From Dicyema japonicum (lineage: Eukaryota > Animalia > Dicyemida): a DNA stretch of 64,000 nucleotides. Below the pieces are notes generated by a model. It was not told where the DNA came from, made no database searches, and saw only the letters and a list, made by a program, of their open reading frames with translations. This document shows positions 13,484 through 53,164 of this stretch, piece after piece; position 1 is the first letter of the stretch, and each line of letters opens with the position of its first letter. The stretch spans positions 584,126 to 648,125 of the forward strand of contig RDEW01000034.1 of NCBI GenBank assembly GCA_011109175.1. Direction: 5' to 3'. The translations under genes and the position numbers were made by a program.

Positions 13484-13639
13484 TTGAGTTTTACTGAAAT
13501 TGGGTATTTATATAATTTATTGGTTTCTTGGAATTTTTTACTGCGAACAAGCATTTCTTGGAATTTTTATTAATGGCTTCCCTAATAAATTTACATAAAT
13601 CTGCAATGCCTTCAATTCACTGAGAAGGGATCAAATTTT

Positions 13640-28250: not shown

Positions 28251-28360
28251 TCATGACATTAAGCACACATGTGTCAAACGTAATCATTGCTTCGGCACGA
28301 AAACTTAACTTCGTAAATGTGCTCGTCTCAAAATATAAAAAATCTTCAAATCGATTCTAC

Positions 28361-28460
28361 ATTTATGTAAATTTATTAGGGAAGTAATAAATGCTTGTTC
28401 GCAGAAAAAATTCCAAGAAATTAATAAATCATATAAATACTCAATTTCAGTAAAACTCAA
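28361..28460 (+). promoter_or_regulatory. Putative promoter/5' leader shared by all eight surface-gene copies
   Basis: A ~100 bp block (ATTTATGTAAATTTATT...GCTTGTTCGCAG...AAATTCCAAGAAA...TATAAATAC...TCAATTTCAGTAAAACTCAA-ATG) precedes every copy, including the inverted one (~13484-13600), although sequences further upstream differ. Its function is inferred from position only. Confidence 0.5.
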
Positions 28461-29284
28461 ATGTTCTGGTTTTTAGTAATTGTGTTAGGAATAATAGAGA
28501 TTTGTATTACATTTTATAAAAATAGCATTACAACAATACACACCATACTCTATGGAAGTGAAATTTGATAATTTCCCAGTAATTTACTTTATTAACAATT
28601 AGGAAGACGAGATAAATTTTGTCAAATCGGTCAATATGTGTCATTAATGTTCAGGCTTTAAGAGAAGTTATGACTATAACCGAAGAGAATATTAATCCTG
28701 AACTTAGCATAACAATAAGGTAATACAACAATTAATTCTTTTAGTCGTGGTCAAGAAAATTGTGATTACAGAGATAGTATTTTAACGGTAACAGTGCTAC
28801 AGATGCTGAAGTATAGATAATTTATATTAATAGATCTTGACTGGAAAAATATTAAAATGTCTGTTAAAAAATATTTTGCGAGGAAAAGAAGTAATAGACC
28901 CTCAATCCCGAGATTTTGATATACTACAGGACGAAAGTGGATGGTTAATAATGTAATATTATTTTAGTGCAAGAATATTATCCGATGAACAAGTTATATT
29001 CCTTCAAGGGATAAACAAAGCAGATTTTTGAATAGAATTGTAGGTTAATAAATTATTAATATTAGAACAACCTCTGTTACGACCACCAGTACAACCACTA
29101 CTCCTATACCTCCTGATGATGATGACATGGACACAGATGAGCAAAAGATATCCATGAAGATTCTGAAAAATTAACCACCAAAGATCGCAGTAATATTGGA
29201 ATAAATTGTATTATTATAATATATTCAGCATTCAATATTATTCATTTCCTGAATGCTCTAATTATTATTGGAGTTATCATTTAA
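28461..29284 (+). CDS. Array surface-protein gene, unit 1 (frameshifted in this assembly)
   Basis: ATG 28461, TAA 29282-29284, all seven GT-AG introns present. 1-nt deletions at ~28800 (CTACAGATG), ~29070 and ~29145. Confidence 0.8.
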
Positions 29285-30289
29285 TTAGATTATTAATAAT
29301 TTGATTGGATTGGGTTCTCTAAATAAAAATTTATTAAAATAATTTTGACTAAAACTAACAGTTAACAATATTGGATGCTCTGGTAATTGAGAACGCATTT
29401 CCTCAATATTTGCATGGTAATGTGCTCAATGGGTCAGCTTTTTTCTCTTCAAAAATTTTTCTTTCAGATCTAATTTGTTTGGGTTTTCGAAGTCACGTGG
29501 AGAATTTCCGAGGCCAAATTCTGATTTTTGAGATCAATTACCTGTTTTTCATTTACTGACACGACCTTATCCCTCAGAAAACTCTGATTAGATACAGCGA
29601 GAAACCGGGCTTGTCGCTATGGAAGAAATTCTGTTCGTCGATTCCATGGCCGAATGTTAGCCCAAATTGGTTTGATCCTCTCAGAAGGAGACCGAGACTT
29701 GCTGCTTCGTAGAAGACCAGTCGATCGATAATGTTGATTTTTTTAAAAATTATTTAGAGTTAAAAAAACATTGAGCCAGTTTTGGGACTCAATCTACCTT
29801 AGATAGAAATACTCTGGAATCCCACCATTTGAAGGATATTTCACCGCAACAATTAGGGAAACCTTGAGCAGGCACAAACGGGAGTTTATATAGACTGAAA
29901 ATGATAATATTGAGTGCCTGTCGGCCTCCTCACTGGGATTATCACTCAAAGGGAGAATAATTTACAATTTTCTTATTATTATCCAAATTTTCAAGTTAGG
30001 TCATCCTTGCAGTCGATCTTTAGTGGACTACAATATTTGGAGAATTATCAACATTTTGGCTTCTCGTTCCATTTAGAGTTCCCATCACTACTGAATCGCT
30101 TGCTGTACTGAATCTTTTCCTGCCGACTCCGAAAACAAAAGAAAAGTTCTCACACATTTAATGTTGTCATAAATTTGCAACCTTCTTTTCGTTTTTCTTT
30201 GATTGTATAAGACTTTTTGTCATTCAAGAGTTTGTAACTTAGAGGTTTGTTCATATGTTCATGTTAAATTAATTAAATTATTCCAAAGA

Positions 30290-31170
30290 CCAAGGATAAG
30301 CAAACTAACTAACTCCTTGATCCTGCCTCATTCCACCGTTCCAGAACTTGTTTCCAGGTAACGACACAGAAGAGGAGTCGTTGACCTGAACACATCCGTT
30401 TCTTCCTCATCAAAGTTACTGGAGCGTCACTGAACTGATTTAGTGATTAATTGCTGTAACCAAATCTTCCTTCCTCGATAGTGCACATTTCATATTTATA
30501 CTCTACCGACATGCTCTCCAGCGTCCTCTTAAGGACAACGGATTGAATGTATGTAGTTTGAGCTCTCTAGCAAATAAATCGTACTTATTCAATTTTTTTA
30601 CTTCAGTGTGCTTCAATAATCCTTGAGAAGTAAAACTCTCCTTGAACACAACTAAACTTAAATAGTCCTCTTAAACACTTATCTATCTTATTCATCATCC
30701 TCACCATTCTCAGAAAATATTTTTAGATTATAAATAATAGTAAGTGATTGGCTGTATACGTCATCAATGATGACTTACTTTGGGATTTAAACAATTTTGG
30801 AAATTTAAATTTTAGAATTTTGCTTAAAGGATCCATTACTAACACACAAAGCCGGAAAGACAGACGAATCTCCTTGCAATATACCACGATTTAATTTAAC
30901 GAACCCAATCTTTCCCTGTTGAAATATCGAATAACTTTCTAATGGCTTATCAGACTTTTCACAAACGTTCCGATCCACATTGGGAAACAGAAAACTCTGA
31001 ACATGGCAGAGAAAGCAATGGTCCACAAAGTTGTACGCCTTCTTTAAATCAATCCACGAAGCGAATATTTTGTTTCCATAATGACTGTTTATGCACTGAT
31101 TTATTACAGCTCGCTCCTTTGCCCCTTGACATATCCTCCTTGCCCATGCTTTTGCAAAACTGACATACAA
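30290..31170 (-). mobile_element. Internally deleted R4/Dong-like retrotransposon fragment, present in units 1-6
   Basis: WIDLKKAY..VDH, VKLNRGILQGDSLS and ..VLKRTLESM.VEY motifs (unit 6 ORF 49691..50098; also 37957..38226). It belongs to the same group as 56660-58340, whose end reads QSTVLKRTLESL. Confidence 0.8.
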
Positions 31171-31329
31171 GGTCTCACGTGAAATTCGTATTATTATAAT
31201 ATATTTATTCCTGATTGTTTTTAATAGTTAAATGTTTATTTAATGATCTTGGTTGTTTTACTGTGGTCTTGAGATTTAATTAAATAAAATTTTATTTTTC
31301 ATGTGAAAACAATTTATTACGTAACAAGA

Positions 31330-31540
31330 CAATCAAAATAATCCACTTGATTGATGAAATGGATGTTTCTTTGACAACTGCCAGAGAAATCCTTTGGAAC
31401 AACATTCGATTTCCCGACTCTCATTCTTCACTTTCGAAATCATTGACCCAAGCGATTTTAGAAAAGAGACGTCTTGGCTCCACTCGTCTAGACAACAACG
31501 GGTTGTACATGGAATCTGAATGAGAGGCTATCTTATTTTT
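31330..31540 (-). mobile_element. CRE-like 3' end fragment, present in units 1-6
   Basis: The minus strand encodes RFHVQPVVV.TSG and QRISLAVV, similar to 19835-19950. Confidence 0.65.
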
Positions 31541-32107
31541 TTATATTGAGAGTATTGAAGGTAAGAGCAGCCTCCCCAAATGAAAATTTATTATGAAATT
31601 ATTAATTAAAAGACAGTTGTTATTAATTAAAGTTAATTAACTTAAAGTCATGAAAAAATTACTTTTATGATCTACAGGTATTAAGCACGGTCTTTTTATG
31701 ATATTCACACAAAATGGAAAACCGCCAGAAGAACGGTGTTTTCGAAAATTTGTTGGTTCCCGAGAGACACTGGGAAAAGATGAGAATATTGCTGAGAAGC
31801 CAGGATCAGCTGATGGCGTTTGTATTTTAATTATTGTTTACCTTGTGATTTATGACTTAATAATAATAGATTGGAATACTATTTAAAAAACGATAGTGGA
31901 ATGACCACTCAGATTATAATGGTATCAGCATCCAAGTATTTTAAAAAGCGTTCTCAAAAGACATACCACCATCGGGATTGTAAAAATGATATTAATTCAG
32001 ATTCTAAATTTATGTAAATTTATTAAGGAAGTAATAAATGCTTGTTCGCAGAAAAAATTCCAAGAAATTAATAAATCATATAAATACTCAATTTCAGTAA
32101 AACTCAA

Positions 32108-32932
32108 ATGTTCTGGTTTTTAGTAATTGTGTTAGGAATAATAGAAATTTGTATTACATTTTATAATAATAGCATTACAACAATACACACCATACCCTAT
32201 GAGAGTGAAATTTGATAATTTCCCAGTAATTTACTTTATTAACAATTAGGAGACGAGAGAAATTTTGTCATACGGTCAAAATGTGTCATTAATGTTAGGC
32301 ATTAGGAGAAGTTATGACTATAACCGAAGAGAATATTAATCCTGAACTTACCATAACAATAAGGTAATACAACAATTAATTCTTTTAGTCGTGGTCATGA
32401 AAATTGTGATTACAGAGATAGTATTTTAACGGTAACAGTGCTACCAGATGCTGAAGTATAGATAATTTATATTAATAGATCTTGACTGGAAAAATATTAA
32501 AATGTCTGTTAAAAAATATTTTGCGAGGAAAAGAAGTAGGAGACGATAAATCCCGAGATTTTGATATACTACATGACGAAAGTGGATGGTTAATAATGTA
32601 ATATTATTTTAGCGCAAGAATATTATCCGATGAACAAGTTTTATTCCTTCAAGAGATAAACAAAGCAGATTTTTTGAAAAGAATTGGAGGTTAACAAATT
32701 ATTAATATTAGAACAACCTACTGTTACGACCACCAGTACAACCACTACTCCTATACCTCCTGATGATAATGATATGGACACAGATGAGCAAAAAGATATC
32801 CATGAAGATTCTGAAAAATTAACCACCAAAGATCGCAGTAATATTGGAATAAATTGTATTATTATAATATATTCAGCATTCAATATTATTCATTTCCTGA
32901 ATGCTCTAATTATTATTGGAGTTATCATTTAA
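32108..32932 (+). CDS. Array surface-protein gene, unit 2 (frameshifted)
   Basis: ATG 32108. The last exon corresponds to ORF 32684..32932. Exon 3 is 25 nt instead of 27. Confidence 0.8.
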
Positions 32933-35753
32933 TTAGATTATTAATAATTTGATTGGATTGGGTTCTCTAAATAAAAGGATTTATTAAAATAATTTTGACT
33001 AAAACTAACAGTTAACAATTATTGGATGCTCTGGTAATTGAGAACGCATTTCCTCGATGATTTGCATCGTAATGTGCTCAATGGGTCAGCTTTTTTCTCT
33101 TCAAAAATTTTTCTTTCAGATCTAATTTGTTTGGGTTTTATCGAAGTCACGTGGAGAATTTCCGAGGCCAAATTCTGATTTTTGAGATCAATTATCTGTT
33201 TTTAATTTACTGACACGACCTTATCCCTCAGAAAACTCTGATTAGATACAGCGAGAAACCGGGCTTGTCGCTATGGAAGAAATTCTGTTCGTCGATTCCA
33301 TGGCCGAATGTTAGCCCAAATTGTTGATCCTCTCAGAGGAGACCGAGACTATGCTGCTCTTCGTAGAAGACCAGTCGATCGATAATGTTGATTTTTTTAA
33401 AAATTATTTAGAGTTAAAAAGAACATTGAGCCAGTTTTGGGACTCAATCTACCTTAGATAGAAATACTCTGGAATCCCACCATTTGAAGGATATTTCACC
33501 GCAACAATTAGGGAAACCTTGAGCAGGCACAAACGGGAGTTTATATAGACTGAAAATGATAATATTGAGTGCCTGTCGGCCTCCTCACTGGGATTATCAC
33601 TCAAAGGGAGAATAATTTACAAGTTTCTTATTATTATCCAGAATTTTCAAGGTTAGGTCATCCTTGCAGTCGATCTTAAGTGGACTACATTATTTGGAGA
33701 ATTAATCAACATTTTGGCTTCTTCGTTCCATTTAGGTTCCCATCACTTGCTGAATCGCTTGCTGTACTGAATCTTTTCTTGCCGACTCTAAAAACTCAAG
33801 AAAAGTTTCTAACACATTTAATATTGTCATAAATTTGCAACCTTCTTTTCGTTTTTCTTTGATAGTTTAAGACTTTTTGCCATTCAACAGTTTGTAACTT
33901 AGAGGTTTGTTCACATGTTCATGTTAAATTAATTAAATTATTCCAAAGACCAAGGATAAACAAACTAACTAACTCCTTGATCCTGTCTCGTTCCACCGTT
34001 CCAGAACTTGTTTCCAGGCAACGACACTGAAGAGGAGTCGTTGACCTGTAACCCATCCGTTTCTTCCTCATCAAAGTTACCTGGAGCGTCACTGAACTGA
34101 TTTATTGATTAATTGCTGTAACCAAATCTTCCTTCCTCGATAGTGCACATTTCATATTTATACTCTACCAACATGCTCTCCAGCGTCCTCTTGAGGACAA
34201 CGGATTGAATGTATGTAGTTTGAGCTCTCTAGCAAATAAATCGTACTTATTCAACTTTTTTACTTCAGTGTGCTTCAATAATCCTTGAGAAGTATAACTC
34301 TCCTTAAACACAACTAAACTGAAATAATCATCTATCTCATTCATCATCCTCACCATTCTCAGCAAATATTTTTAGATTATCAATAATAGTAAGTGATTGG
34401 CTGTATACGTCATCAATGATTAATTACTTTGGGATATAGACAATTTTGGAAATTTAAATTTTAGAATTTTGCTTAAAGGATCCATTACTAACACACAAAG
34501 CCGGAAAGACAACGAATCTCCTTGCAATATACCACGATTTAATTTAACGAAAACAATCTTTCCTGTTGAAATTCGAATAACTTTCTAATGGCTTATCAGA
34601 CTTTTCACAAACCTTCCGATCCACATTGGGAAACAGAAAACTCAGAACATGGCAGAGAAAGCAATAGTCCACAAAGTTGTACGCCTTCTTTAAATCAATC
34701 CACGAAGCAAATAGTTTGTTTCCATAATGACTGTTTATGCACTGATTTATTACAGCTCGCTCCTTTGCCCCTTGACATATCCTCCTTGCCCCATTTTTGC
34801 GGAACTGACATACAAGGTCTCACGTGAAATTCGTATTATTATAATATATTTATTCCTGATTGTTTTTAATGGTTAAATGTTTATTTAATGATCATGGTTG
34901 TTTTACTGTGGTCTTGAGATTTAATTAAATAAAATTTTATTTTTCATGTGAAAACAATTTATTACGTAACAAGACAATCAAAATAATCCACTTGATTGAT
35001 GAAATGGATGTTTCTTTTGACAACTGCCAGAAGAAATCCTTTGGAACAACTATTCGATTTCCCGACTCTCATTCTTCACTTTGGAAATCATTGACCCAAG
35101 CGATTTTAGAAAAGAGGCGTCTTGGCTCCACTCGTCTAGACAACAACGGGTTGTACATGGAATCTGAATGAGAGGCTATCTTATTTTTTATCTTGAAATT
35201 ATTAAAAGTAAGAGCAGCCTCCCCAAATGAAAATTTATTATGAAATTATTAATTAAAAGACAGTTGTTATTAATTAAAGTTAATTAATTTAAAGTCATGA
35301 AAAAATCACTTTTATGATCTACAAGTATTAAGCACGGTCTTTTTATGATATTCACACAAAATGAAAACCGCCAGAAGAACGGTGTTTTCGAAAATGTGTT
35401 GGTTCCCGAGAGACACTGGGAAAAGATGAGAATATTGCTGAGAAGCCAGGATCAGCTGATGGCGTTTGTATTTTAATTATTGTTTACCTTGTGATTTATG
35501 ACTTAATAATAATAGATTGGAATACTATTTAAAAAACGATAGTGGAATGACCACTCAGATTATAATGGTATCAGCATCCAAGTATTTTAAAAAGCGTTCT
35601 CAAAAGACATACCACCATCGGGATTGTAAAAATGATATTAATTCAGATTCTAAATTTATGTAAATTTTTAAGGAAGTAATAAATGCTTGTTCGCAGAAAA
35701 AATTCCAAGAAATTAATAAATCATATAAATACTCAATTTCAGTAAAACTCAAT

Positions 35754-36085
35754 GCCGGTGGCTTAGTGGTTAGGTGTCGGGCTTAAGTGGCTTAGGCTAC
35801 GGGTTCGAATCTCGCTTGCTGTTCACCTTGGTGGAAGGTTCACGCATCTACGATGCAGAAATGGTTTGACGAGTGACGCCGTCATCAGTGAATACTCACT
35901 GCGGAACTGAATTTGTCTAGAAAGGACACTCACACAAGAAAAAGAAAAAAAGAAGTGAAGATCATTCCTTGGTTCTACGATTAGTTAAAATTAACTGTTC
36001 TTTACTTAAATAAAGTGTGTGTCCTGCTATGCGGAGCTATAAAATACTATGGCTCTCGTGAAAAGGCTTTATTATTATTATTATT
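35754..36085 (+). mobile_element. tRNA-derived SINE with RTE-like 3' tail, inserted at the start codon of the unit 3 gene
   Basis: A box TGGCTTAGTGG (35759-35769), B box GGTTCGAATC (35802-35811), (TTA)n tail, and ~13-15 bp TSD AGTAAAACTCAAT / AGTAAAAACTCAAAT. Units 1, 2, 4, 6 and 7 show the empty site. Confidence 0.9.
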
Positions 36086-36098
36086 AGTAAAAACTCAA

Positions 36099-36923
36099 AT
36101 GTTCTGGTTTTTAGTAAATTGTGTTAGGAATAATAGAATTTGTATTACATTTATAATAATAGCATTACAACAATACACACCATACTCTATGGAAGTGAAA
36201 TTTGATAATTTCCCAGTAATTTACTTTACTAACAATTAGGGAGACGAGAGAAATTTTGTCATACCGGTCAAAATGTGTCATTAATGTTTAGGCATTAGGA
36301 GAAGTTATGACTATAACCGAAGAGAATAATAATCCTGAACTTAGCATAACAATAAGGTAATACAACAATTAATTCTTTTAGTCGTGGTCAAGAAAATTGT
36401 GATTACAGAGATAGTATTTTAACGGTAACAGTGCTACAGATGCTGAAGTATAGATAATTTATATTAATAGATCTTGACTGGAAAAATATTAAAATGTCTG
36501 TTAAAAAATATTTTGCGAGGAAAAGAAGTAATAGACCCTCAATCCCGAAAATTTTGATATACTACAGGACGAAAGTGGATGGTTAATAATGTAATATCAT
36601 TTTAGCGCAAGAATATTATCCGATGATCAAGTTTATTCTTCAAGGGATAAACAAAGCAGACTTTTTGAATAGAATTGGAGGTTAATAAATTATTAATATT
36701 AGAACAACCTCCTGTTACGACCACCAGTACAACCACTACTCCTATACCTCCTGATGATGATGACATGGACACAGATGAGCAAAAAGATATCCATGAAGAT
36801 TCTGAAAAATTAACCACCAAAGATCGCAGTAATATTGGAATAAATTGTATTATTATAATATATTCAGCATTCAATATTATTCATTTCCTGAATGCTCTAA
36901 TTATTATTGGAGTTATCATTTAA
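36099..36923 (+). CDS. Array surface-protein gene, unit 3 (frameshifted, SINE upstream)
   Basis: ATG 36099. The last exon corresponds to ORF 36675..36923. Compensating +1/-1 indels in exon 1 and a 1-nt deletion at ~36437. Confidence 0.8.
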
Positions 36924-39745: not shown

Positions 39746-40583
39746 ATGTTCTGGTTTTTAGTAATTGTGTTAGGAATAATAGAAATTTGTATTACATTTT
39801 ATAATAATAGCATTACAACAATACACACCATACCCTATGAAGTGAAATTTGATAATTTCCCAGTAATTTACTTTATTAACAATTAGGAGACGAGATAGAA
39901 ATTTTGTCATACGGTCAAATGTGTCATTAATGTTCAGGCATTAGGAGAAGTTATGACTATAACCGAAGAGAATATTAATCCTGAACTTACCATAACAATA
40001 AGGTAATACAACAATTAATTCTTTTAGTCGTGGTCAAGAAAATTGTGATTACAGAGATAGTATTTTAACGGTAACAGTGCTACCAGATGCTGAAGTATAG
40101 ATAATTTATATTAATAGATCTTGACTGGAAAAATATTAAAATGTCTGTTAAAAAATATTTTGCGAGGAAAAGAAGTAATAGACCCTCAACCCCGAGATTT
40201 TGATATACTACAGGACGAAAGTGGATGGTTAATAATGTAATATCATTTTAGCGCAAGAATATTATCCGATGAACAAGTTATATTCCTTCAAGAGATAAAC
40301 AAAGCAAATTTTTTGAATAGAATTGTAGGTTAATAAATTTTTAATATTAGAACAACCTACTGTTACGACCACCAGTACAACCACTACTCCTATTCCTCCT
40401 GATGATGATGACATGGACACAGATGAGCAAAAAGATATCCATGAAGATTCTGAAAACTTAACCACCAAAGATCGCAGTAATATTGGAATAAATTGTATAA
40501 TTATAATATATTTAGCATTCAATATTATTCATTTCCTGAATGCTTTAATTATTATTGGAGTTATCATTCAATTAGATTATTAA
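39746..40583 (+). CDS. Array surface-protein gene, unit 4 (frameshifted; QLDY C-terminal variant)
   Basis: ATG 39746, TAA 40581-40583. A 1-nt deletion in exon 2 (~39841) gives an early TGA. Confidence 0.8.
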
Positions 40584-43367
40584 TAATTTGATTGGATTGG
40601 GTTCTCTAAATAAAAAGATTTATTAAAATTAATTTTGACTAAAACTAACAGTTAACAATCATTGGATGCTCTGGTAATTGAGAACGCATTTCCTTGATGA
40701 TTTGCATCGTAATGTGCTCAATGGTCAGCTTTTTTCTCTTCAAAAATTTTTCTTTCAGATCTAATTTGTTTGGGTTTTCGAAGTCACGTGGAGAATTTCC
40801 GAGGCCAAATTCTGATTTTTGAGATCAATTACCTGTTTTTCATTTACTGACACGACCTTATCCCTCAGAAAACTCTGATTGGACACAGCGAGAAACCGGG
40901 CTTGTCGCTATGGAAGATATTTTGTTCGTCGATTCCATGGCCGAATGTTTGCCCAAATTGTTTAAATTCTCAGAGAAGACCGAAACCGTGCTGTTCTTCG
41001 TAGAAAACCAGTCGATCGATAATTTTGAGTTTTTTTAAAAATTATTTAGAGTTAAAAAAGCATTGAGCCAGTTTTGGGACTCAATCCACCTGAGATAGAA
41101 ATACTCTGGAAACCCAGTATTTAAAGGATATTTCACCACAACAATTAGAAACACCCTGAACAGCACAAACGGGAGTTTATTTAGACTGAAAATGAAAATA
41201 TTGAGTGCCTGTTGTTTTCCTCACTGGGATTATCACTCAAAGGGAGAATAATCTTCAATTTTCTTATTATTATCCAAATTTTTCAAAGTTAGGTCATTCT
41301 TGCAGTCGATCTTTAGTGGACTACGTTATTTGGAGAATTTATCAACATTTTGGCTTCTTCTTTCCATTTAGAGTTCCCATCACTACTGAATCGCTTGCTG
41401 TACTGAATCTTTTCCTGCCGACTCCGAAAACAAAAGAAAAGTTCTCACACATTTAATGTTGTCATAAATTTGCAACCTTCTTTTCGTTTTTCTTTGATTG
41501 TATAAGACTTTTTTGCCATTCAACAGTTTGTAACTTAGAGGTTTGTTCATATGTTCATGTTAAATTAATTAAATTATTCCAAAGACCAAGGATAAGCAAA
41601 CTAACTAACTCCTTGATCCTGCCTCGTTCCACCGTTCCAGAACTTGTTTCCAGGTAACGACACAGAAGAGGAGTCGTTGACCTGAGACACATCCGTTTCT
41701 TCCTCATCAAAGTTATTTGGAACGTCACTGAACTGATTTATTGATTGATTGCTGTAACCAAATCTTCCTTCCTCGATAGTGCACATTTCATATTTATACT
41801 CTACCAACATGCTCTCCAGCGTCCTCTTGAGGACAACGGATTGAATGTATGTAGTTTGAGCTCTCTAGCAAATAAATCGTACTTATTCAATTTTTTACTT
41901 CAGTGTGCTTCAATAATCCTTGAGAAGTAAAACTCCTCTTAAACACAACTAAACTAATAGTCATCTATCTTATTCATCATCCTCACCATTCTCAGAAATA
42001 TTTTTAGATTATCAATAATAGTAAGTGATTGGCTGTATACGTCATCAATGATGAATTACTTTGGGATTTAGACAATTTTGGAAATTTAAATTTTAGAATT
42101 TTGCTTAAAGGATCCATTACTAACACACAAAGAATCTCCTTGCAATATACCACGATTTAATTTAACGAACCCAATCTTTCCTGTTGAAATATCGAATAAC
42201 TTTCTAATGGCTTATCAGACTTTCACAAACCTTCCGATCCACATTGGGAAACAGAAAACTCAGAACATGGCAGAGAAAGCAATAGTCCACAAAGTTGTAC
42301 GCCTTCTTTAAATCAAATCCACGAAGCAAATAGTTTGTTTCCATAATGACTGTTTATGCACTGATTTATTACAGCTCGCTCCTTTGCCCCTTGACATATC
42401 CTCCTTGCTCCCATGTTTTGCGAACTGACATACAAGGTCTCACGTGAAATATATATTATATTTATTCCTGATTGTTTTTAAGGGTTAAATGTTTATTTAA
42501 TGATCATGGTTGTTTTACTTTGGTCTTGAGATATTAATTAAATAAAATTTTATTTTTCATGTGAAAACAATTTATTACGTAACAAGACAATCAAAATAAT
42601 CCACTTGATTGATGAAATGGATGTTTCTTTTGACAACTGCCAGAAAAATCCTTTGGAACAACCATTCGATTTCCCGACTCTCATTCTTCACTTTGGAAAT
42701 CATTGACCCAAGCGATTTTAGAAAAGAGGCGTCTTGGCTCCACTCGTCTAGACAACAACGGGTTGTACATGGAATCTGAATGAGAGGCTATCTTATTTTT
42801 TTATCTTGAAATTATTAAAAGTAAGAGCAGCCTCCCCAAATGAAAATTTATTATGAAATTATTAATTAAAAGACAGTTGTTATTAATTAAAGTTAATTAA
42901 TTTAAAGTCATGAAAAAATCACTTTTATGATCTACAAGTATTAAGCACGGTCTTTTTATGATATTCACACAAAATGAAAAACCGCCAGAAGAACGGTGTT
43001 TTCGAAAATGTGTTGGTTCCCGAGAGACACTGGGAAAAGATGAGAATATTGCTGAGAAGCCAGGATCAGCTGATGGCGTTTGTATTTTAATTATTGTTTA
43101 CCTTGTGATTTATGACTTAATAATAATAGATTGGAATACTATTTAAAAAACGATAGTGGAATGACCACTCAGATTATAATGGTATCAGCATCCAAGTATT
43201 TTAAAAAGCGTTCTCAAAAGACATACCACCATCGGGATTGTAAAAATGATATTAATTCAGATTCTAAATTTATGTAAATTTATTAAGGAAGTAATAAATG
43301 CTTGTTCGCAGAAAAAATTCCAAGAAATTAATAAATCATATAAATACTCAATTTCAGTAAACTCAAT

Positions 43368-43698
43368 GGCGGTGGCTTAGTGGTTAGGTGTCGGGCTTAA
43401 GTGGCTTAGGCTACGGGTTCGAATCTCGCTTGCTGTTCACCTTGGTGGAAGGTTCACGCATCTACGATGCAGAAATGGTTTGACGAGTGACGCCGTCATC
43501 AGTGAATACTCACTGCGGAACTGATTTGTCTAGAAAGGACACTCACACAAGAAAAAGAAAAAAAGAAGTGAAGATCATTCCTTGGTTCTACGATTAGTTA
43601 AAATTAACTGTTCTTTACTTAAATAAAGTGTGTGTCCTGCTATGCGGAGCTATAAAATACTATGGCTCTCGTGAAAAGGCTTTATTATTATTATTATT
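43368..43698 (+). mobile_element. Second copy of the tRNA-derived SINE at the identical site in unit 5
   Basis: Near-identical to 35754-36085, with the same TSD and the same tail length. Confidence 0.9.
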
Positions 43699-43711
43699 AG
43701 TAAAAACTCAA

Positions 43712-44539
43712 ATGTTCTGGTTTTTAGTAATTGTGTTAGGAATAATAGAAATTTGTATTACATTTTATAATAATAGCATTACAACAATACACACCATACC
43801 CTATGACAGTGAAATTTGATAATTTCCCAGTAATTTACTTTATTAACAATTAGGAGACGAGAAGAAATTTTGTCATACCGGTCAAAATGTGTCATTAATG
43901 TTTAGGCTTAGGAGAAGTTATGACTATAACCGAAGAGAATATTAATCCTGAACTTACCATAACAATAAGGTAATACAACAATTAATTCTTTTAGTCGTGG
44001 TCAAGAAAATTGTGATTACAGAGATAGTATTTTAACGGTAACAGTGCTACCAGAAGCTGAAGGTATAGATAATTTATATTAATAGATCTTGACTGGAAAA
44101 ATATTAAAATGTCTGTTAAAAAAATTTTTGCGAGGAAAAGAAGTAATAGACCCTCAATCCCGAAAATTTGATATACTACAGGACGAAAGTGGATGGTTAA
44201 TAATGTAATATCATTTTAGCGCAAGAATATTATCCGATGATCAAGTTTTATTCCTTCAAGGGATAAACAAATCAGATTTTTTGAATAGAATTGTAGGTTA
44301 ATAAATTTTTAATATTAGAACAACCTACTGTTACGACCACCAGTACAACCACTACTCCTATACCTCCTGATGATGATGACATGGACAAAGATGAGCAAGA
44401 AGATATCAATGAAGATTCTGAAAAATTAACCACCAAAGATCGCAGTAATATTGGAATAAATTGTATAATTATAATATATTCAGCATTCAATATTATTCAT
44501 TTCCTGAATGCTCTAATTATTATTGGAGTTATCATTTAA
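43712..44539 (+). CDS. Array surface-protein gene, unit 5 (frameshifted, SINE upstream)
   Basis: ATG 43712, TAA 44537-44539. A 1-nt deletion at the start of exon 4 (GCTTAGGA) creates a TAG. Confidence 0.8.
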
Positions 44540-47366
44540 TTAGATTATTAATAATTTGATTGGATTGGGTTTTCTAAATAAAAGGATTTATTAAAATAAT
44601 TTTGACTAAAACTAACAGTTAACAATTATTGATGCTCTGGTAATTGAGAACGCATTTCCTTCAATAATTTGCATGGTAATGTGCTCAATGAGTCAGCTTT
44701 TTTCTCTTCAAAAATTTTTCTTTCAGATCTAATTTGTTTGGTTTTTGTCGAAGTCACGTGGAGAATTTCCGAGGCCAAATTCTGATTTTTGAGATCAAAT
44801 ACCTGTTTTTCATTTACTGAGACGACCTTATCCCTCAGAAAACTCTGATTAGACACAGCGAGAAACCGGGCTTGTCGCTATGGAAGAAATTCTGTTCGTC
44901 GATTCCATGGTCGAATGTTTGCCCAAATTGTTTATCCTCTCAGAGGAGACCGAGACCATGCTGCTCTTCGTAGAAGACCAGTCGATCGATAATGTTGATT
45001 TTTTTAAAAATTATTTAGAGTTAAAAAAACATTGAGCCAGTTTTGGGACTCAATCTACCTTAGATAGAAATACTCTGGAATCCCACCATTTGAAGGATAT
45101 TTCACCGCAACAATTAGGGAAACCCTGAGCAGGCACAAACGGGAGTTTATATAGACTGAAAATGATAATATTGAGTGTCTGTCGGCCTCCTCACTGGGAT
45201 TATCACTCAAAAAGAGAATAATTTTACAATTTTCTTATTATTATCCAGAATTTTCAAGGTTAGGTCATCCTTGCAGTCGATCTTAAGTGGACTACATTAT
45301 TTGGAGAATTAATCAACATTTTGGCTTCTTCGTTCCATTTAAGGTTCCCATCACTTGCTGAATCGCTTGCTGTACTGAATCTTTTCCTGGCGACTCCAAA
45401 AACTCAAGAAAAGTTTCTCACACATTTAATATCGTCATAAATTTGCAACCTTCTTTTCGTTTTCTTTGATAGTTTAAGACTTCCTTTTGCCATTCAACAG
45501 TTTGTAACTTAGAGGTTTGTTCACATGTTCATGTTAAATTAATTAAATAATTCCAAAGACCAAGGATAAGCAAACTAACTAACTCCTTATCCTGTCTCGT
45601 TCCACCGTTCCAGAACTTGTTTCCAGGCAACGACACAGAAGAGGAGTCGTTGACCTGAAACCCATCCGTTTCTTCCTCATCAAAGTTACCTGGAACGCCA
45701 CTGAACTGATTTATTGATTAATTGCTGTAACCAAATTTTCCTTCTTCGATAGTGCTCATTTCATATTTATACTCTACCAACATGCACTACAGCATCCTCT
45801 TGAGACAACGGATTGAATGTATGTAGTTTGAGCTCTCTAACAAATAAATCGTACTTATTCAACTTTTTTACTTAGTGTGAATCAATAATCCTTGAGAAGT
45901 AAAACTCCTCTTAAACACAACTAAACTGAAATAATCATCTATCTCATTCATCATCCTCACCATTCTCAGCAAATATTTTTAGATTATAAATAATAGTAAG
46001 TGATTGGCTGTATACGTCATCAACGATTAATTACTTTGGGATATAGACAATTTTGGAAATTTAAATTTTAGAATTTTGCTTAAAGGATCCATTACTAACA
46101 CACAAAGCCGGAAAGACAGCGAATCTCCTTGCAATATACCACGATTTAATTTAACGAACCCAATCTTTCCCTGTTGAAATATCAGATAACTTTCCAATTG
46201 CATATCAGACTCTTCACGAACCTTCCAATCCAAATTGGGAAACAGAAAACTCTGAACATGGCAGTGAAAGCAATAGTCTACAAAGTTGTACGCCTTCTTT
46301 AAATAAATCCACGAAGCGAATATTTTGTTTCCTTAATCACTGTTTTTGCACTGATTTATTACAGCTCGCTCCTTCGCCCCTTGACATATCCTCCTTGCCC
46401 ATGCTTTTGCAAAACTGACATACAAGGTTTCACGTAAAATTCGTATTATTATAATATATTTATTCCTGATTGTTTTTATTGGATTAAATGTTTATTTAAT
46501 GATCTTGGTTGTTTTACTGTGGTCTTGAGATGTTAAATAAATAAAATTTTATTTTTCATTTGAAAACAATTTATTACATAACAAGACAATCAAAATAATC
46601 CACTTGATTGATGAAATAGATGTTTCTCTTGACAACTGCCAGAGAAATCCTTTGGAACAACCATTCGATTTCCCGACTCTCATTCTTCACTTTCGAAATC
46701 ATTGACCCAAGCGATTTTAGAAAAGAGACGTCTTGGCTCCACTCGTCTAGACAACAACGGGTTGTACATGGAATCTGAATGAGAGGCTATCTTATTTTTT
46801 TATATTGAGAGTATTGAAGGTAGAGCAGCCTCCCCAAATGAAAATTTATTATGAAATTATTAATTAAAAGACAGTTGTTATTAATTAAAGTTAATTAACT
46901 TAAAGTCATGAAAAAATCACTTTTATGATCTACAGGTATTAAGCACGGTCTTTTTATGATATTCACACAAAATGGAAAACCGCCAGAAGAACGGTGTTTT
47001 CGAAAATTTGTTGGTTCCCGAGAGACACTGGGAAAAGATGAGAATATTGCTGAGAAGCCAGGATCAGCTGATGGCGTTTGAATTTTAATTATTGTTTACC
47101 TTGTGATTTATGACTTAATAATAATAGATTGCAATACTATTTAAAAAATCGATAGTGGAATGACCACTCAGATTATAATGGTATCAGCATCCAAGTATTT
47201 TAAAAAGCGTTCTCAAAAGACATACCACCATCGGGATTGTAAAAATGATATTAATTCAGATTCTAAATTTATGTAAATTTATTAAGGAAGTAATAAATGC
47301 TTGTTCGCAGAAAAAATTCCAAGAAATTAATAAATCATATAAATACTCAATTTCAGTAAAACTCAA

Positions 47367-48193
47367 ATGTTCTGGTTTTTAGTAATTGTGTTAGGAATAA
47401 TAGAAATTTGTATTACATTTTATAATAATAGCACTACAACAATACACACCATACCCTATGAGAGTGAAATTTGATAATTTCCCAGTAATTTACTTTATTA
47501 ACAATTAGGGAGACGAGAGAAATTTTGTCATACCGGTCAATATGTGTCATTAATGCTTAGGCATTAGGAGAAGTTATGACTATAACCGAAGAGAATATTA
47601 ATCCTGAACTTAGCATAACAATAAGGTAATACAACAATTAATTCTTTTAGTCGTGGTCAAGAAAATTGTGATTACAGAGATAGTATTTTAACGGTAACAG
47701 TGCTACCAGATGCAGAAGTATAGATAATTTATATTAATAGATCTTGACTGGAAAAATATTAAAATGTCTGTTAAAAAATATTTTGCGAGGAAAAGAAGTA
47801 ATAGACCCTCAATCCCGAAATTTTGATATACTGCAGGACGAAAGTGGATGGTTAATAATGTAATATCATTTTAGTGCAAGAATATTATCCGATGATCAAG
47901 TTTTATTCCTTCAAGGGATAAACAAAGCAGATTTTTTGAAAAGAATTGGAGGTTAACAAATTATTAATATTAGAACAACCTCCTGTTACGACCACCAGTA
48001 CAACCACTACTCCTATACCTCCTGATGATGATGACATGGACACAGATGAGCAAAAGATATCCATGAAGATTCTGAAAAATTAACCACCAAAGATCGCAGT
48101 AATATTGGAATAAATTGTATTATTATAATATATTCAGCATTCAATATTATTCATCTCCTGAATGCTCTAATTATTATTGGAGTTATCATTTAA
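47367..48193 (+). CDS. Array surface-protein gene, unit 6 (best-preserved copy; one 1-nt deletion in the last exon)
   Basis: Exons 47367-47409, 47432-47484, 47509-47535, 47561-47625, 47651-47717, 47741-47850, 47875-47951 and 47974-48193. Introns are 22, 24, 25, 25, 23, 24 and 22 nt, all GT-AG, and frame is kept at every junction. Only one A is missing, from the run at ~48052. Confidence 0.9.
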
Positions 48194-51031
48194 TTAGATT
48201 ATTAATAATTTGATTGGATTGGGTTCTCTAAATAAAAGGATTTATTAAAATAATTTTGACTAAAACTGACAGTTAACAATAATTGATGCTCTGGTAATTG
48301 AGAACGCATTTCCTCCAATAATTTGCATGGAAATGTGCTCAATGGGTCAGCTTTTTTCTCTTCAAAACTTTTTCTTTCTGATCTAATTCGTTTGGGCTTT
48401 ATCGAAGTCACGTGGAGAATTTCCGAGGCCAAATTCTGATTTTTGAGATCACATACCTGTTTTTCATTTACTGACACGACCTTATCCCTCAGAAAACTCT
48501 GATTAGACACAGCGAGAAACCGGGCTTGTCGCTATGGAAGAAATTCTGTTCGTCGATTCCATGGCCGAATGTTTGCCCAAATTGTTGATCCTCTCAGAGG
48601 AGACCGAGACCATGCTGCTCTTCGTAGAAAACCGTCGATCGATAATGTTGATTTTTTTAAAAATTATTTAGAGTATTAATTTAAAAAAAAAACATTGAGC
48701 CAGTTTTGGGACTCAATCTACCTTAGATAGAAATACTCTGGAATCCAACCATTTGAAGGATATTTCACCGCAACAATTTGGGAAACCCCGAGCAGGCACA
48801 AACGGGAGTTTATATAGACTGAAAATGATAATATTGAGTGTCTGTCGGCCTCCTCACTGGGATTATCACTCAAAAAGAGAATAATTTACAATTTTCTTAT
48901 TATTATCCAGAATTTTCAAGGTTAGGTCATCCTTGCAGTCGATCTTAAGTGGACTACATTATTTGGAGAATTAATCAACATTTTGGCTTCTTCGTTCCAT
49001 TTAGGGTTCCCATCACTTGCTGAATCGCTTGCTGTACTGAATCTTTTCCTGGCGACTCCAAAAACTCAAGAAAAGTTTCTCACACATTTAATATTGTCAT
49101 AAATTTGCAACCTTCTTTTCGTTTTCTTTGATTGTTTAAGACTTCCTTTTTGCCATTCAACAGTTTGTAACTTAGAGGTTTGTTCACATGTTCATGTTAA
49201 ATTAATTAAATTATTCCAAAGACCAAGGATAAGCAAACTAACTAACTCCTTATCCTGTCTCGTTCCACCGTTCCAGAACTTGTTTCCAGGCAACGACACA
49301 GAAGAGGAGTCGTTGACCTGAAACCCATCCGTTTCTTCCTCATCAAAGTTACCTGGAACGCCACTGAACTGATTTATTGATTAATTGCTGTAACCAAATC
49401 TTCCTTCCTCGATAGTGCACATTTCATATTTATACTCTACCAACATGCTCTCCAGCATCCTCTTGAGGACAACGGATTGAATGTATGTAGTTTGAGCTCT
49501 CTAACAAATAAATCGTACTTATTCAACTTTTTTACTTAGTGTGAATCAATAATCCTTGAGAAGTAAAACTCCTCTTAAACACAACTAAACTGAAATAATC
49601 ATCTATCTCATTCATCATCCTCACCATTCTCAGCAAATATTTTTAGATTATCAATAATAGTAAGTGATTGGCTGTATACGTCATCAATGATTAATTACTT
49701 TGGGATATAGACAATTTTGGAAATTTAAATTTTAGAATTTTGCTTAAAGGATCCATTACTAACACACAAAGCCGGAAAGACAACGAATCTCCTTGCAATA
49801 TACCACGATTTAATTTAACGAACCCAATCTTTCCTTGTTGAAATTTCGAATAACTTTCCAATGGCTTATGAGACTCTTCACAAACCTTCCAATCCACATT
49901 GGGAAACAGAAAACTCAGAACATGGCAGAGAAAGCAATGGTCCACAAAGTTGTACGCCTTCTTTAAATAAATCCACGAAGCGAATATTTTGTTTCCATAA
50001 TGACTGTTTATGCACTGATTTATTACAGCTCGCTCCTTCGCCCCTTGACATATCCTCCTTGCTCCATGCTTTTGCGAAATTGACATACAAGGACTCACGT
50101 GAAATTCGTATTATTATAATATATTTATTCCTGATTGTTTTTAATTAGTTAAATGTTTATTTAATGATCTTGGTTGTTTTACTGTGGTCTTGAGATGTTA
50201 ATTAAATAAAATTTTATTTTTCATGTGAAAACAATTTATTACGTAACAAGACAATCAAAATAATCCACTTGATTGATGAAATGGATGTTTCTTTTGACAA
50301 CTGCCAGAAAAATCCTTTGGAACAACCATTCGATTTCCCGACTCTCATTCTTCACTTTGGAAATCATTGACCCAAGCGATTTTAGAAAAGAGGCGTCTTG
50401 GCTCCACTCGTCTAGACAACAACGGGTTGTACATGGAATCTGAATGAGAGGCTATCTTATTTTTTTATCTTGAAATTATTAAAAGTACGAGCAGCCTCCC
50501 CAAATGAAAATTTATTATGAAATTATTAATTAAAAGACAGTTGTTATTAATTAAAGTTAATTAATTTAAAGTCATGAAAAAATCACTTTTATGATCTACA
50601 AGTATTAAGCACGGTCTTTTTATGATATTCACACAAAATGGAAAACCGCCAGAAGAACGGTGTTTTCGAAAATTTGTTGGTTCCCGAGAGACACTGGGAA
50701 AAGATGAGAATATTGCTGAGAAGCCAGGATCAGCTGATGGCGTTTGTATTTTAATTATTGTTTACCTTGTGATTTATGACTTAATAATAATAGATTGGAA
50801 TACTATTTAAAAAACGATAGTGGAATGACCACTCAGATTATAATGGTATCAGCATCCAAGTATTTTAAAAAGCGATCTCAAAAGACATACCACCATCGGG
50901 ATTGTAAAAATGATATTAATTCAGATTCTAAATTTATGTAAATTTATTAAGGAAGTAATAAATGCTTGTTCGCAGAAAAAATTCCAAGAAATTAATAAAT
51001 CATATAAATACTCAATTTCAGTAAAACTCAA

Positions 51032-51868
51032 ATGTTCTGGTTTTTAGTAATTGTGTTAGGAATAATAGAGATTTGTATTACATTTTATAAAATAGCACTA
51101 CAACAATACACACCATACTCTATGGAAGTGAAATTTGATAATTTCCCAGTAATTTACTTTATTAAAAATTAGGGAGACGAGATAGATTTTGTCATCGGTC
51201 AATATGTGTCATTAATGTTCAGGCTCTAAGAGAAGTTATGACTATAACCGAAGAGAATATTAATCCTGAACTTACCATAACAATAAGGTAATACAACAAT
51301 TAATTCTTTTAGTCGTGGTCAAGAAAATTGTGATTACAGAGATAGTATTTTAACGGTAACAGTGCTACAAGATGCTGAAGTATAGATAATTTATATTAAT
51401 AGATCTTGACTGGAAAAATATTAAAATGTCTGTTAAAAAATATTTTGCGAGGAAAAGAAGTAATAGACCCTCAACCCCGAGAATTTGATATACTACAGGA
51501 CGAAAGTGGATGGTTAATAATGTAATATCATTTTAGCGCAAGAATATTATCCGATGAACAAGTTTTATTCCTTCAAGGGATAAACAAATCAGACTTTTTG
51601 AATAGAATTGTAGGTTAATAAATTTTTAATATTAGAACAACCTACTGTTACGACCACCAGTACAACCACTACTCCTATACCTCCTGATGATGATGACATG
51701 GACACAGATGAGCAAAAAGATATCCATGAAGATTCTGAAAAATTAACCACCAAAGATCGCAGTAATATTGGAATAAATTGTATTATTATAATATATTCAG
51801 CATTCAATATTATTCATTTCCTGAATGCTCTAATTATTATTGGAGTTATCATTCAATTAGATTATTAA
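51032..51868 (+). CDS. Array surface-protein gene, unit 7 (frameshifted; QLDY variant)
   Basis: ATG 51032, TAA 51866-51868. Exon 3 is 25 nt instead of 27. Confidence 0.8.
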
Positions 51869-51929
51869 TAATTTGATTGGATTGGGTTCTCTAAATAAAA
51901 AGATTTATTAAAATAATTTTTGACTAAAA

Positions 51930-52760
51930 AACTAACAGTTAACAATTATTGGATGCTCTGGTAATTGAGAACGCATTTCCTCGATGATTTGCATCGTAAT
52001 GTGCTCAATGGGTCAGCTTTTTTCTCTTCATTCCTTTTTTTTTGATATGTTTATCAGGGTCAGAGACCTGTTTCTTATGATTCCTACCATCTCACGGTGA
52101 CTGGTTAAAAAATGAATTGTCTATCGATACATTCGAAATTCTCATCTTTAGGGAATCTGTCTTTTCCGAGGCTGAGTCTGTATTAGATGTTCAAATATGA
52201 TATCCGAGATATTCAAACAAGTGGCGTCCCAGCCGAGGTATGAGTCTGTATTAGATGTTCAAATATGATATCTGAGATATTCAAACAAGTGGCGTCCCAT
52301 TTTCCCATGTAAAGAGATTTGTTTCTTCAGACTTTTTGTTGGTTTAGGGAAGTCCGATAGGCTCAACTTGACACGAAAACCGACCGCTTATACTCCTCCA
52401 CCAATAACTCAGATGATTTAACTGATTCTCGGATTCCTTTAACGACTCTTCCTCAAAAGAGAAAGTTAATACATTTAGCGTCGACCATTCTTCCACATCT
52501 ACAGCTATTGATCACACAAACATCTATTTCGAGGCGGAAGCAAACCACAATTCTTGTGGCTTCGTCATCAAGTGTCCCAAATGAGTTGCATGAGAATGAT
52601 GTGAGTCCTGCAACACTTCGGTTTGTCGATGTAGAAACAATCGTGCCAAGTTATATCTCATCAATAGTCTGAGCATAAAAGTTTGTCCCAGTCTCGTTGT
52701 TTATTAGAGTTCTTTAGGAATCTCACACATAGACGCATCCAGCATTCCTAAGCTGCCCAT
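51930..52760 (-). mobile_element. CRE-like 3' fragment, inverted paralog of 11850-12590
   Basis: Collinear reverse-complement similarity to 11850-12600 (e.g. TCAGGGTCAGAGAC, TCTGTCTTTTCCGAGGCTGAGTCTG, GAGAATGATGTGAGTCCTGCAACACTTCGG). Confidence 0.8.
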
Positions 52761-53164
52761 GTCACTGGTCAGAGACCAGTTCGCAAGGCTGTAATTAATT
52801 ATCACCTCGATTGATTTCCAAAAATATTTTGGTCACTCCTGGTATCAAATTTCACAGACCAGTCAATAAGAGTTGAGATTTCTATTATGATGCCTCATTT
52901 TTCCGAAATATTGTTAACATTTCCAAATTGGCATTTTTCGTGGATATAACTTCGCCTCTAAATGACCTATATTTGAAACTGCATGCATGTAATCAATTTA
53001 TACACTAAATATATGCACAAATCACTGCTTTTGAAAAGAAATTGATGTTGTGGGTATTACAGTTACAAAAAGGAAATATGACGCATTTTTTGAATTTTCT
53101 TTCTACGAATGAATATGCAAACAGTTATGGAAATTAAAATTTATTAAATAGGACAAAACATCAG

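Follow-up and report, generated by a model that had tools for sequence, protein, structure and literature searches.

A tandem array of mostly frameshifted micro-intron genes for a putative surface protein in the dicyemid Dicyema japonicum

Small mucin-type surface glycoproteins held by a GPI anchor include the mucins of Trypanosoma cruzi and, in mammals, the CD52/CD24/Thy-1 class. The locus studied here lies in a 64,000-nucleotide stretch of the Dicyema japonicum genome, referred to below as the window (GenBank assembly GCA_011109175.1, contig RDEW01000034.1, positions 584,126 to 648,125). Its predicted product resembles these proteins in its signal-like N-terminus, its short Thr/Pro stalk and the small residues that precede a tail-less hydrophobic end, and the cassette that carries the gene is multi-copy in a parasite. 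The likeness is one of layout alone: the predicted product has a 130-aa acidic three-Cys domain, there is no N-glycosylation sequon in the consensus product, and its tail, at 24 residues, is longer than is typical of a GPI signal; anchoring is putative. Schistosome micro-exon genes (MEGs) are comparable in that the cassette would also specify a small secretory parasite protein from many short exons, one of which (exon 3; 27 nt, phase 0/0) is a symmetric, hypervariable micro-exon whose skipping leaves the frame intact. The cassette differs from the MEGs in that exon 3 is the sole symmetric exon of its eight, and the miniature parts are the introns, not the exons. With the pseudogene-rich tandem and subtelomeric arrays of the Trypanosoma brucei VSG archive the array shares many broken copies, mosaic conversion and an omega near 1, but it has no expression site and no known intact, expressed copy, eight copies in the window and a dead LINE spacer. 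Neutral decay explains the array data without an antigen-switching role.

The published annotation of D. japonicum contains 5,012 genes, and repeats seen more than 30 times were masked (PMC6736024). In such an annotation, genes that lie in tandem repeats and are readable only once introns of 22–25 nt have been removed are easily missed. The cassette represents one more lineage-specific putative surface-protein family in this parasite.

Self-BLAST and a repeat finder, together with alignment of the units, located a forward-strand array at 28353–52043 of the window, confirming the tandem array noticed in a preliminary description of this DNA. A 1.12-kb cassette (A), which carries the gene, and a 2.55-kb spacer (B), which is a dead LINE fragment, make up one repeat unit; the array has six such units in full and a seventh in part, in the order (A+B) six times, followed by a terminal A. 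The units start at 28353, 32000, 35646, 39638, 43260, 47259 and 50924, are 3622–3999 bp in length and have pairwise identities of 95–98%. Upstream of the gene, cassette A has ~108 nt; the gene itself has eight exons and seven micro-introns, and an AATAAA signal lies 38 nt past the stop codon. An isolated, inverted cassette (u0) brings the number of copies in the window to eight, as had been proposed, and the peptides quoted in the preliminary description were found in this copy and in all seven copies of the array (Table 1).

Table 1. Positions in the window of the cassettes, gene copies, spacer, SINEs and right flank.
Feature	Position	Strand	Description
u0 (eighth cassette)	12496..13600	-	Isolated, inverted, ~91% identical to array copies
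u0 gene	ATG 13483 to ~12648	-	1-nt deletion in exon 6; dead
U1 gene copy	28461..29284	+	Four 1-nt deletions (exons 5, 7, 8, 8); dead
U2 gene copy	32108..32932	+	Lesions confined to exon 3
SINE in U3	35753..36086	+	334 nt, tRNA-like head, (ATT)n tail, abuts ATG
U3 gene copy	36099..36923	+	Five indels (exons 1, 1, 5, 6, 7); SINE abuts ATG; dead
U4 gene copy	39746..40583	+	Indels in exons 2, 3; stop TAA -> TCA (+4 codons); dead
SINE in U5	43367..43699	+	Same insertion as in U3; 332/334 positions identical to U3 copy
U5 gene copy	43712..44539	+	-1 in exon 4, +1 in exon 5; SINE before ATG
U6 gene copy	47367..48193	+	1-nt deletion at ~48051
U6 exons 1-4	47367-47409, 47432-47484, 47509-47535, 47561-47625	+	
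U6 exons 5-8	47651-47717, 47741-47850, 47875-47951, 47974-48193	+	
Unit 6 spacer B (typical of the six)	48378..50923	-	Decayed LINE-type retroelement fragment, strand opposite to gene
U7 gene copy	51032..51868	+	Single lesion: 2-nt deletion in exon 3; stop TAA -> TCA (+4 codons)
Flank C	52044..52885	+	Right of last cassette; 88-90% to 11712-12495; unrelated to B

Cassette A conceals a real multi-exon micro-intron gene in what appears to be repeat junk, as the ORF of its spliced consensus lies far beyond the level reached by chance. The gene model has seven GT-AG introns of 22, 24, 25, 25, 23, 24 and 22 nt, in agreement with the 22–25 nt originally proposed, and the GT and AG were kept in all 56 introns (seven in each of eight copies). 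The AT content of the introns was 82.7% vs. 67.6% for the exons. The introns of an SmD1 gene near the array measure 26 and 25 nt, indicating that the introns of the array are host-style. Splicing of the eight-copy majority consensus produced an uninterrupted ORF of 663 nt (220 codons) with phases kept across the seven introns. In the chance control, in which GT..AG introns of 20–27 nt could be chosen freely, spliced ORFs from 30 shuffles of the cassette had a mean length of 184 nt and a maximum of 306 nt, while 159 nt was obtained from the antisense strand and no more than 414 nt from chunks of B. The spliced ORFs of the real copies were 552–696 nt, far above these controls. The preliminary claim of a frame-keeping product of ~220 aa was upheld for the consensus, but not for unit 6, the example on which it had been illustrated, owing to the 1-nt deletion in exon 8 of that copy. 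A 22-nt version of intron 3 was rejected because its removal leaves a TGA in frame and because U1 and U7 lack its AG; the version adopted is the 25-nt GTCAAT..(T/C)AG intron. Use of a ciliate genetic code was also rejected, since the consensus ORF contains no in-frame TAA or TAG, stops at TAA and has Gln encoded by CAA/CAG.

Reading and hydropathy analysis of the consensus supported the architecture suggested earlier for the putative surface protein, i.e., an N-terminal segment, three Cys, a stalk, a linker and a tail. The 220-aa consensus product (pI ~4.3) has a hydrophobic N-terminus (residues 2–12; Kyte-Doolittle maximum of 2.5 in a 15-residue window) followed by E-I-S, with no basic n-region. 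The Cys residues of the acidic ectodomain (~130 aa) are at positions 69, 94 and 122, and beyond this domain are a Thr-rich stalk (residues 151–161), an acidic linker, the small residues D188/S190/N191/G193 and, finally, 24 hydrophobic residues (197–220). No residues follow the hydrophobic end in the consensus, U2 or U5, and QLDY is added in U4, U7 and u0. Judged in this way, the layout is putatively that of a classic GPI-anchored protein, and a tail-less transmembrane helix fits the putative C-terminal anchor as well. Pfam searches with in-frame exon pieces of 21–72 aa identified no family. Exon 8 (72 aa) had no matches among 1.84 billion representative proteins, a result that carries no information on paralogues or transcripts, since in that collection the SmD1 exon of the same window likewise matched nothing above 80% identity. 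Metagenome contigs scanned for exact matches to an invariant 34-mer contained none.

None of the eight copies is intact under canonical splicing, each having at least one frameshift, and the several intact paralogues expected of a variant antigen system were not observed. For U1, U3, U4 and u0, no nearby splice choice restored the frame. Skipping of exon 3 leaves both U2 and U7 open, as does the use of an alternative acceptor in U2 or of an upstream donor in U7; the resulting products have 211–217 aa (U2) and 215–221 aa (U7). In U5 there are stops within the stretch between the exon 4 and exon 5 lesions, and exons 6–8 are intact. The deletion in U6 is in an A-run of exon 8 and places SNIG and the hydrophobic tail out of frame, with a stop after ~183 residues and loss of the anchor. 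At most two to three copies are readable with non-canonical splicing, and five of the eight are not rescuable; with most array copies dead, DNA copy number overstates the working repertoire. Lesions cluster in exon 3, where bypass is possible, which suggests that the frame has been, or still is, maintained in some copies. In simulation, however, every 1-nt deletion placed in exon 3 could be rescued, so that little weight attaches to the rescue of U2, U5 and U7.

The exon variants comprised 16 synonymous and 54 non-synonymous changes, compared with the 15.9 and 50.4 expected from the mutation spectrum of spacer B, giving an omega of 1.07. Omega estimates were 0.90–1.07, with an approximate 95% range of 0.5–1.7 (from the 16/70 counts). 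Variability in the exons was comparable to that in B at both AT sites (6.1 vs. 6.5%) and GC sites (11.7 vs. 11.9%), and indel columns accounted for 3.1% of the exons and 2.4% of the introns. An omega of ~1 and exon variability equal to that of a LINE relic gave no indication of diversifying selection. The retention of introns, the frameshifts and the neutral pattern are those of an array of unprocessed pseudogenes, with the caveat that there were no nonsense substitutions among the 70 exon variants vs. 3.6 expected (P = 0.024). In addition, none of the 28 splice-dinucleotide columns was variable (P ~0.05, estimated from the exon rate of 10.3%). Both observations are weak signals against plain decay.

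The units are gene-conversion mosaics: 54% of informative site pairs failed the four-gamete test, a proportion that increased with distance. Diversity along the unit varied from 0.4 to 6.8%, and the block of low diversity covered the end of B and the first 150 nt of A. As this block spans both the end of B and the start of A, recent homogenization is a likelier cause than constraint, and its extension from B into A weakened the idea that the introns are more conserved than the exons.

The LINE-type assignment of spacer B is based on reverse transcriptase (RT) motifs read from its translation, which are LINE-type, not LTR-type, and on a weak Pfam RVT_1 match at 49694–50110 (E 0.005, below the cut-off). 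No other Pfam family was identified in B, the RT fragment had no protein matches, and the ORFs of the flanks produced nothing above threshold. All six B spacers have one truncation point in common, which indicates that the array grew by DNA duplication and not by repeated insertion. In U3 and U5 the SINE lies between the ATG and the upstream region, and that of U3 is flanked by a duplication of ~11 nt (GTAAAACTCAA / GTAAAAACTCAA). Searches with Rfam and for tRNAs, which covered the window, the SINE (with ARAGORN) and flank C, made no calls. The homologue of flank C at 11712–12495 adjoins the isolated cassette. The left end of A is the same to within ~8 bp in three contexts, i.e., against the left flank X at 28353, against B within the array and against the sequence Y beside u0 at ~13600–13608, and simple unequal crossing-over does not account for this identity. 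The right end of A is at unit offset 1211, both against B and against C. The possibility that flank X is a diverged B was rejected (local alignment score of 31 vs. a shuffle maximum of 36).

Based on these findings, we think it fairly probable that the locus represents an orphan putative surface-protein family whose array consists mostly of unprocessed pseudogenes, amplified together with a dead LINE fragment and undergoing gene conversion. We consider it mainly a decaying array, rather than a working antigen system, because nearly every copy is frameshifted and drifting. Cassette A would then be a complete, compact, lineage-specific gene with host-type micro-introns. Its ancestral product of ~220 aa would enter the secretory pathway via the N-terminal hydrophobic signal, bear the acidic three-Cys domain of ~130 aa on a short, Thr-rich and probably O-glycosylated stalk, and be retained at the cell surface through a GPI-type signal at its C-terminus or else by a tail-less transmembrane helix. 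Unequal crossing-over would have amplified the gene and the adjoining dead LINE fragment into the 6.5-unit array, with one extra copy inverted ~15 kb to the left of it. Patches would continue to be swapped among the units by gene conversion, and most copies would by now be unprocessed pseudogenes. At best, U2 and U7 may yield protein via exon 3 skipping or re-splicing, and U6 an anchorless secreted form.

The preliminary description had proposed an amplified, polymorphic surface protein as a candidate host-interaction or variant-antigen system, and these data do not sustain an active system of that kind: all copies are frameshifted under canonical splicing, omega is ~0.9–1.07, exon variability equals that of the dead LINE spacer, indel columns are about as common in exons as in introns, and two units have a SINE just before the ATG. 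It is distinctly unlikely that the array is an active and diversifying family of surface antigens in which several units are expressed, change is host-driven and broken units act as donors. Such a family would be consistent with an omega of ~1 in the absence of nonsense substitutions, the retention of every splice site, a symmetric, skippable and hypervariable exon 3, the patchwork conversion between units, and the fact that U2 and U7 can be read through. However, every copy requires non-canonical splicing and five of eight are beyond rescue, the exons vary as much as the neutral spacer and not more, exons and introns have similar frequencies of indels, SINEs have come between the upstream region and the ATG in two units, and chance alone predicts the rescue of exon 3 lesions. 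We consider it highly improbable that the array is a working diversity generator, in which U2, U7 or a distant master is fed by its frameshifted neighbors through patchwise conversion, and the skippable, hypervariable exon 3 and a slippage-prone A-run that toggles the anchor vary the exposed protein; if true, a dicyemid-like parasitic animal would have a system for varying its surface. It is very unlikely that the copies are really intact and the frameshifts are assembly errors in a tandem repeat that is hard to polish. The published Dicyema assembly, the likely source of this sequence, merged PacBio RS II (Falcon) contigs with Illumina contigs (PMC6736024), and given the PacBio RS II contigs some private indels could be errors of this type. 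The ratio of indel events to substitutions is high (89:275), 68 of the 89 events are of 1 bp and mostly deletions, with 25% in runs of at least 4 nt vs. a background of 10.6%, all of which would fit assembly error. Against this, a third of the 1-bp indels are outside any homopolymer, the private:shared ratio of the indels (61:28) matches that of the substitutions (187:88), and shared indels track local haplotype blocks of nearby substitutions (identical partitions, 15.5% within 200 bp vs. 3.8% at distance). Based on the last two observations, the indels appear to be real mutations.

It is possible, if rather unlikely, that cassette A is a mobile or mobilized module, carried for example antisense at the 3′ end of a LINE, and that the eight copies are decaying insertions, or derivatives, of an intact master elsewhere. 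Antisense carriage would account for the introns having been kept, and the RT relic in B is indeed on the strand opposite to the gene. The constant left end in three unrelated contexts, with no homology between X and the end of B, and the identical right end against B and C are also in keeping with a module, and repeat families usually have, as here, a consensus that is intact and copies that decay neutrally. The cassette junctions, however, had no poly-A or microsatellite tail and no clear target-site duplication, and when the cassette ends were read for signs of LTRs (TG..CA, PBS, PPT), Helitrons (TC..CTRR) and terminal inverted repeats, none was convincing. Moreover, the single truncation point of B points to growth by DNA duplication, B and C have no common sequence past the junction, and the copy count is that of one window. 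The occurrence of the same 1.1-kb cassette ends in three contexts presents a small puzzle as to how such genes spread.

Analyses of the array layout identified six full repeat units (3647, 3646, 3992, 3622, 3999 and 3665 bp, in order) and a final partial unit of 1120 bp, with 95-98% identity among them. Each unit consisted of a 1.12-kb part, cassette A, which contains the small gene (+ strand), and a 2.55-kb spacer, B. As A was present at both ends of the array, the layout was X-(A-B)x6-A-C, where X and C are the left and right flanks. The gene copies of units 1-7 are referred to as U1-U7, and the isolated, inverted eighth copy as u0.

The eight copies together gave a majority consensus with an uninterrupted 220-codon ORF after removal of seven introns (22, 24, 25, 25, 23, 24 and 22 nt, in order) from between exons of 43, 53, 27, 65, 67, 110, 77 and 221 nt (sum 663 nt). 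The GT..AG ends were kept in 56 of 56 introns, which started with GTA, GTT or GTC, ended with TAG or CAG, and were richer in AT than the exons (82.7% vs 67.6%). Intron 3 was the 25-nt GTCAAT..(T/C)AG version; a 22-nt form, which introduced a TGA and whose acceptor AG was missing in U1 and U7, was rejected. To calibrate these findings against chance we used a dynamic program that freely removed any 20-27-nt GT..AG segment and scored the longest spliced ORF. This ORF averaged 184 nt (maximum 306 nt) in 30 cassette shuffles, was 159 nt on the antisense strand of A and reached at most 414 nt in chunks of B, as against 552-696 nt in the real gene copies, indicating that the gene structure is real. 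The seven GT-AG introns of 22-25 nt in the preliminary description were confirmed, and the peptides it quoted were all found in the array. Its spliced protein of ~220 aa held for the consensus but not for U6, the copy it had used as its example, in which the frame is broken in exon 8.

Features of the array, its gene copies and the control gene (array limits and unit starts from repeat finding and self-BLAST)
Feature	Position	Strand	Remarks
Tandem array	28353-52043		
U1	unit start 28353	+	four 1-nt deletions (exons 5, 7, 8, 8); dead
U2	unit start 32000	+	lesions confined to exon 3; open if exon 3 skipped or re-spliced
U3	unit start 35646	+	five indels and SINE before ATG; dead
U4	unit start 39638	+	indels in exons 2 and 3; dead
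U5	unit start 43260	+	-1 in exon 4, +1 in exon 5, stops between; SINE before ATG; open only with contrived splice choices
U6	unit start 47259	+	1-nt deletion in exon 8 A-run; ~183 aa without anchor
U7	unit start 50924	+	2-nt deletion in exon 3; open if exon 3 skipped or re-spliced
u0 (eighth cassette A)	12496-13600	inverted	~91% identity to array copies; deletions of 1 nt (exon 6) and 3 nt (exon 8); dead
U6 ATG	47367	+	canonical stop ends at 48193
U6 introns	47410-47431, 47485-47508, 47536-47560, 47626-47650, 47718-47740, 47851-47874, 47952-47973	+	
SINE directly before U3 ATG	35753-36086	+	334 nt
SINE directly before U5 ATG	43367-43699	+	
Least diverged block	50259-50923 and 47259-47408		equivalents in other units; spans B/A junction and gene upstream region
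SmD1 (Sm D1 snRNP) gene	8779-9111	+	intact, three exons; product matches Sm D1 proteins
SmD1 intron 1	8793-8818	+	26 nt, GT-AG
SmD1 intron 2	8896-8920	+	25 nt, start apparently GC (GC-AG)

The SmD1 gene served as a host-gene control for micro-intron size. Its top public matches had only 72-80% identity, indicating that the proteome of the source organism is absent from the protein library; a protein search with exon 8, which returned no matches from this library, is thus uninformative on paralogues or transcripts. Myxobolid myxozoans and Dicyema japonicum are the only animals known to have micro-introns of such size (PMC13644364). The window, with ~35% GC and dense LINE, SINE and DNA-transposon content, fits the D. 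japonicum genome (36.7% GC, 49% repeats, LINE-rich; PMC6736024) and is a poorer fit to the TE-poor myxozoans.

The consensus product has hydrophobic residues at 2-12, an acidic domain of ~130 aa (pI ~4.3; Cys 69, 94 and 122), a segment rich in Thr (151-161) and an acidic linker (164-181), followed by the small residues D188, S190, N191 and G193 and then 24 hydrophobic residues up to the C-terminus. Judged by reading and hydropathy, this layout, which had been proposed as GPI- or tail-anchored, is present in the consensus and would fit either a GPI-anchored protein or a type I membrane protein that lacks a tail. The consensus product had no N-glycosylation sequon, and Pfam searches with the exon pieces gave no match. 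The gene family is real, specific to its lineage and had so far been hidden; its product is a putative anchored surface glycoprotein.

None of the eight copies was intact under the canonical seven-intron splicing pattern. Among the six full units, 187 of 275 substitution columns were private and 88 shared, and the 89 indel events divided in the same proportions (61 private, 28 shared). Shared short indels and shared substitutions had identical partitions in 15.5% of pairs lying within 200 bp vs 3.8% of those beyond 1.2 kb, indicating that indels were inherited with haplotype blocks, and a third of the 1-bp indels were outside any homopolymer. These several observations indicate that the indels are real mutations, although some private ones may be errors, as the likely source assembly included PacBio RS II contigs (PMC6736024).

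The exon 8 deletion of U6 was also present in U1, and the TAA stop was changed to TCA in U4 (40568), U7 (51853) and u0 (~12663), extending the frame by four codons (QLDY). A rescue search that allowed, within 14 nt, alternative GT/GC donors and AG acceptors, with introns of 18-42 nt, reached the canonical C-terminus in U2, U5 and U7, and found no route to it in U1, U3, U4 or u0. Exon 3 is symmetric (27 nt) and flanked by two phase-0 introns, and with it skipped U2 (211 aa) and U7 (215 aa) were open. These rescues are weak evidence because simulated 1-nt deletions were rescuable likewise, without exception in exon 3 and in 66% of cases in exon 4. Most of the gene copies are unprocessed pseudogenes.

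The exons contained 16 synonymous and 54 non-synonymous variants (pN/pS 0.90) and no nonsense variants, compared to 15.9, 50.4 and 3.6 expected under the mutation spectrum measured in B, giving an omega of 1.07 and a probability of 0.024 for zero nonsense variants. Variable columns were as frequent in exons as in B (6.1 vs 6.5% at AT sites, 11.7 vs 11.9% at GC sites), introns and A flanks were about half as variable, and exon 3 was a hot spot in which 45% of columns varied and five of eight copies carried indels. The amino-acid sequence is unconstrained overall. None of the 28 splice-dinucleotide columns varied (P ~0.05, our own estimate from the 10.3% exon rate), and two marginal hints point to open frames and splicing having been maintained until recently. 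The proposal that the family represents a variant-antigen system is unsupported, given the lack of intact copies, the omega value and the equal variability of exons and B, yet may still hold for two or three copies, those with the least damage.

Diversity along the unit ranged from 0.4 to 6.8% and was lowest in the last 650 nt of B and the first 150 nt of A (pi 0.4-2% vs 3-7% elsewhere), a block that resembles recent homogenisation more than constraint, yet either could be the cause. The four-gamete test was failed by 54% of informative site pairs (34% within 300 bp, 61% beyond 1.5 kb), and single-partition runs were long (e.g., U1+U4, U1+U5, U5+U6); the units are mosaics formed by gene conversion or unequal exchange. 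On its minus strand B had a weak reverse-transcriptase match (RVT_1, E 0.005, 49694-50110) and LINE-type motifs recognised by reading, with no further family or protein matches.

The main reason for still entertaining A as a mobilised cassette, which we consider unlikely, is the constancy of its ends in differing contexts. The left end is constant within ~8 bp beside three unrelated sequences, X (28353), the end of B, and Y, which adjoins the u0 cassette (~13600); the right end has the identical position against B and against C (52044-52885), a homologue of which (11712-12495) adjoins the u0 cassette. A tail, a target duplication, an inverted repeat and LTR-type or Helitron-type ends were looked for at the ends of A, and none was found. 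Our reading is that the recombining tandem array arose by amplification of the gene along with a dead LINE fragment.

The SINEs of U3 and U5 matched at 332 of 334 positions and were closer than their surrounding units. They had a tRNA-like head with box A/B-like TGGCTTAGTGG and GGTTCGAATC, an (ATT)n tail and a flanking ~11-nt duplication (GTAAAACTCAA / GTAAAAACTCAA); ARAGORN and Rfam made no call on them. A 54-nt SINE piece had a 94% match at 58534-58586.

Flank C had no family match. Its two copies shared a perfectly identical run of ~138 nt (~52486-52623 vs ~11970-12110, minus strand), the remainder being ~88% identical; the run is overlapped by an open frame of ~103 codons on the strand of the gene, with no match in Pfam or Rfam. 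A 68-bp unit was in tandem duplicate in the array copy of C (52166-52299) and single in the other. In open frames at 53168-53698 (-) and 15649-16776 (+), a Cys-rich motif precedes RPDG...WD(V/A); judged by reading, these frames are similar to the restriction-like endonuclease region at the C-terminus of some LINEs, and a Pfam search with the former was negative. LINE remains at 9327-11652 (-), which share the strand of the u0 gene, begin ~60 nt past the end of flank C; they open with an endonuclease-like part (weak Exo_endo_phos, E 0.11), followed by RT-like pieces, and their RT region had 73% identity to 61117-61344.
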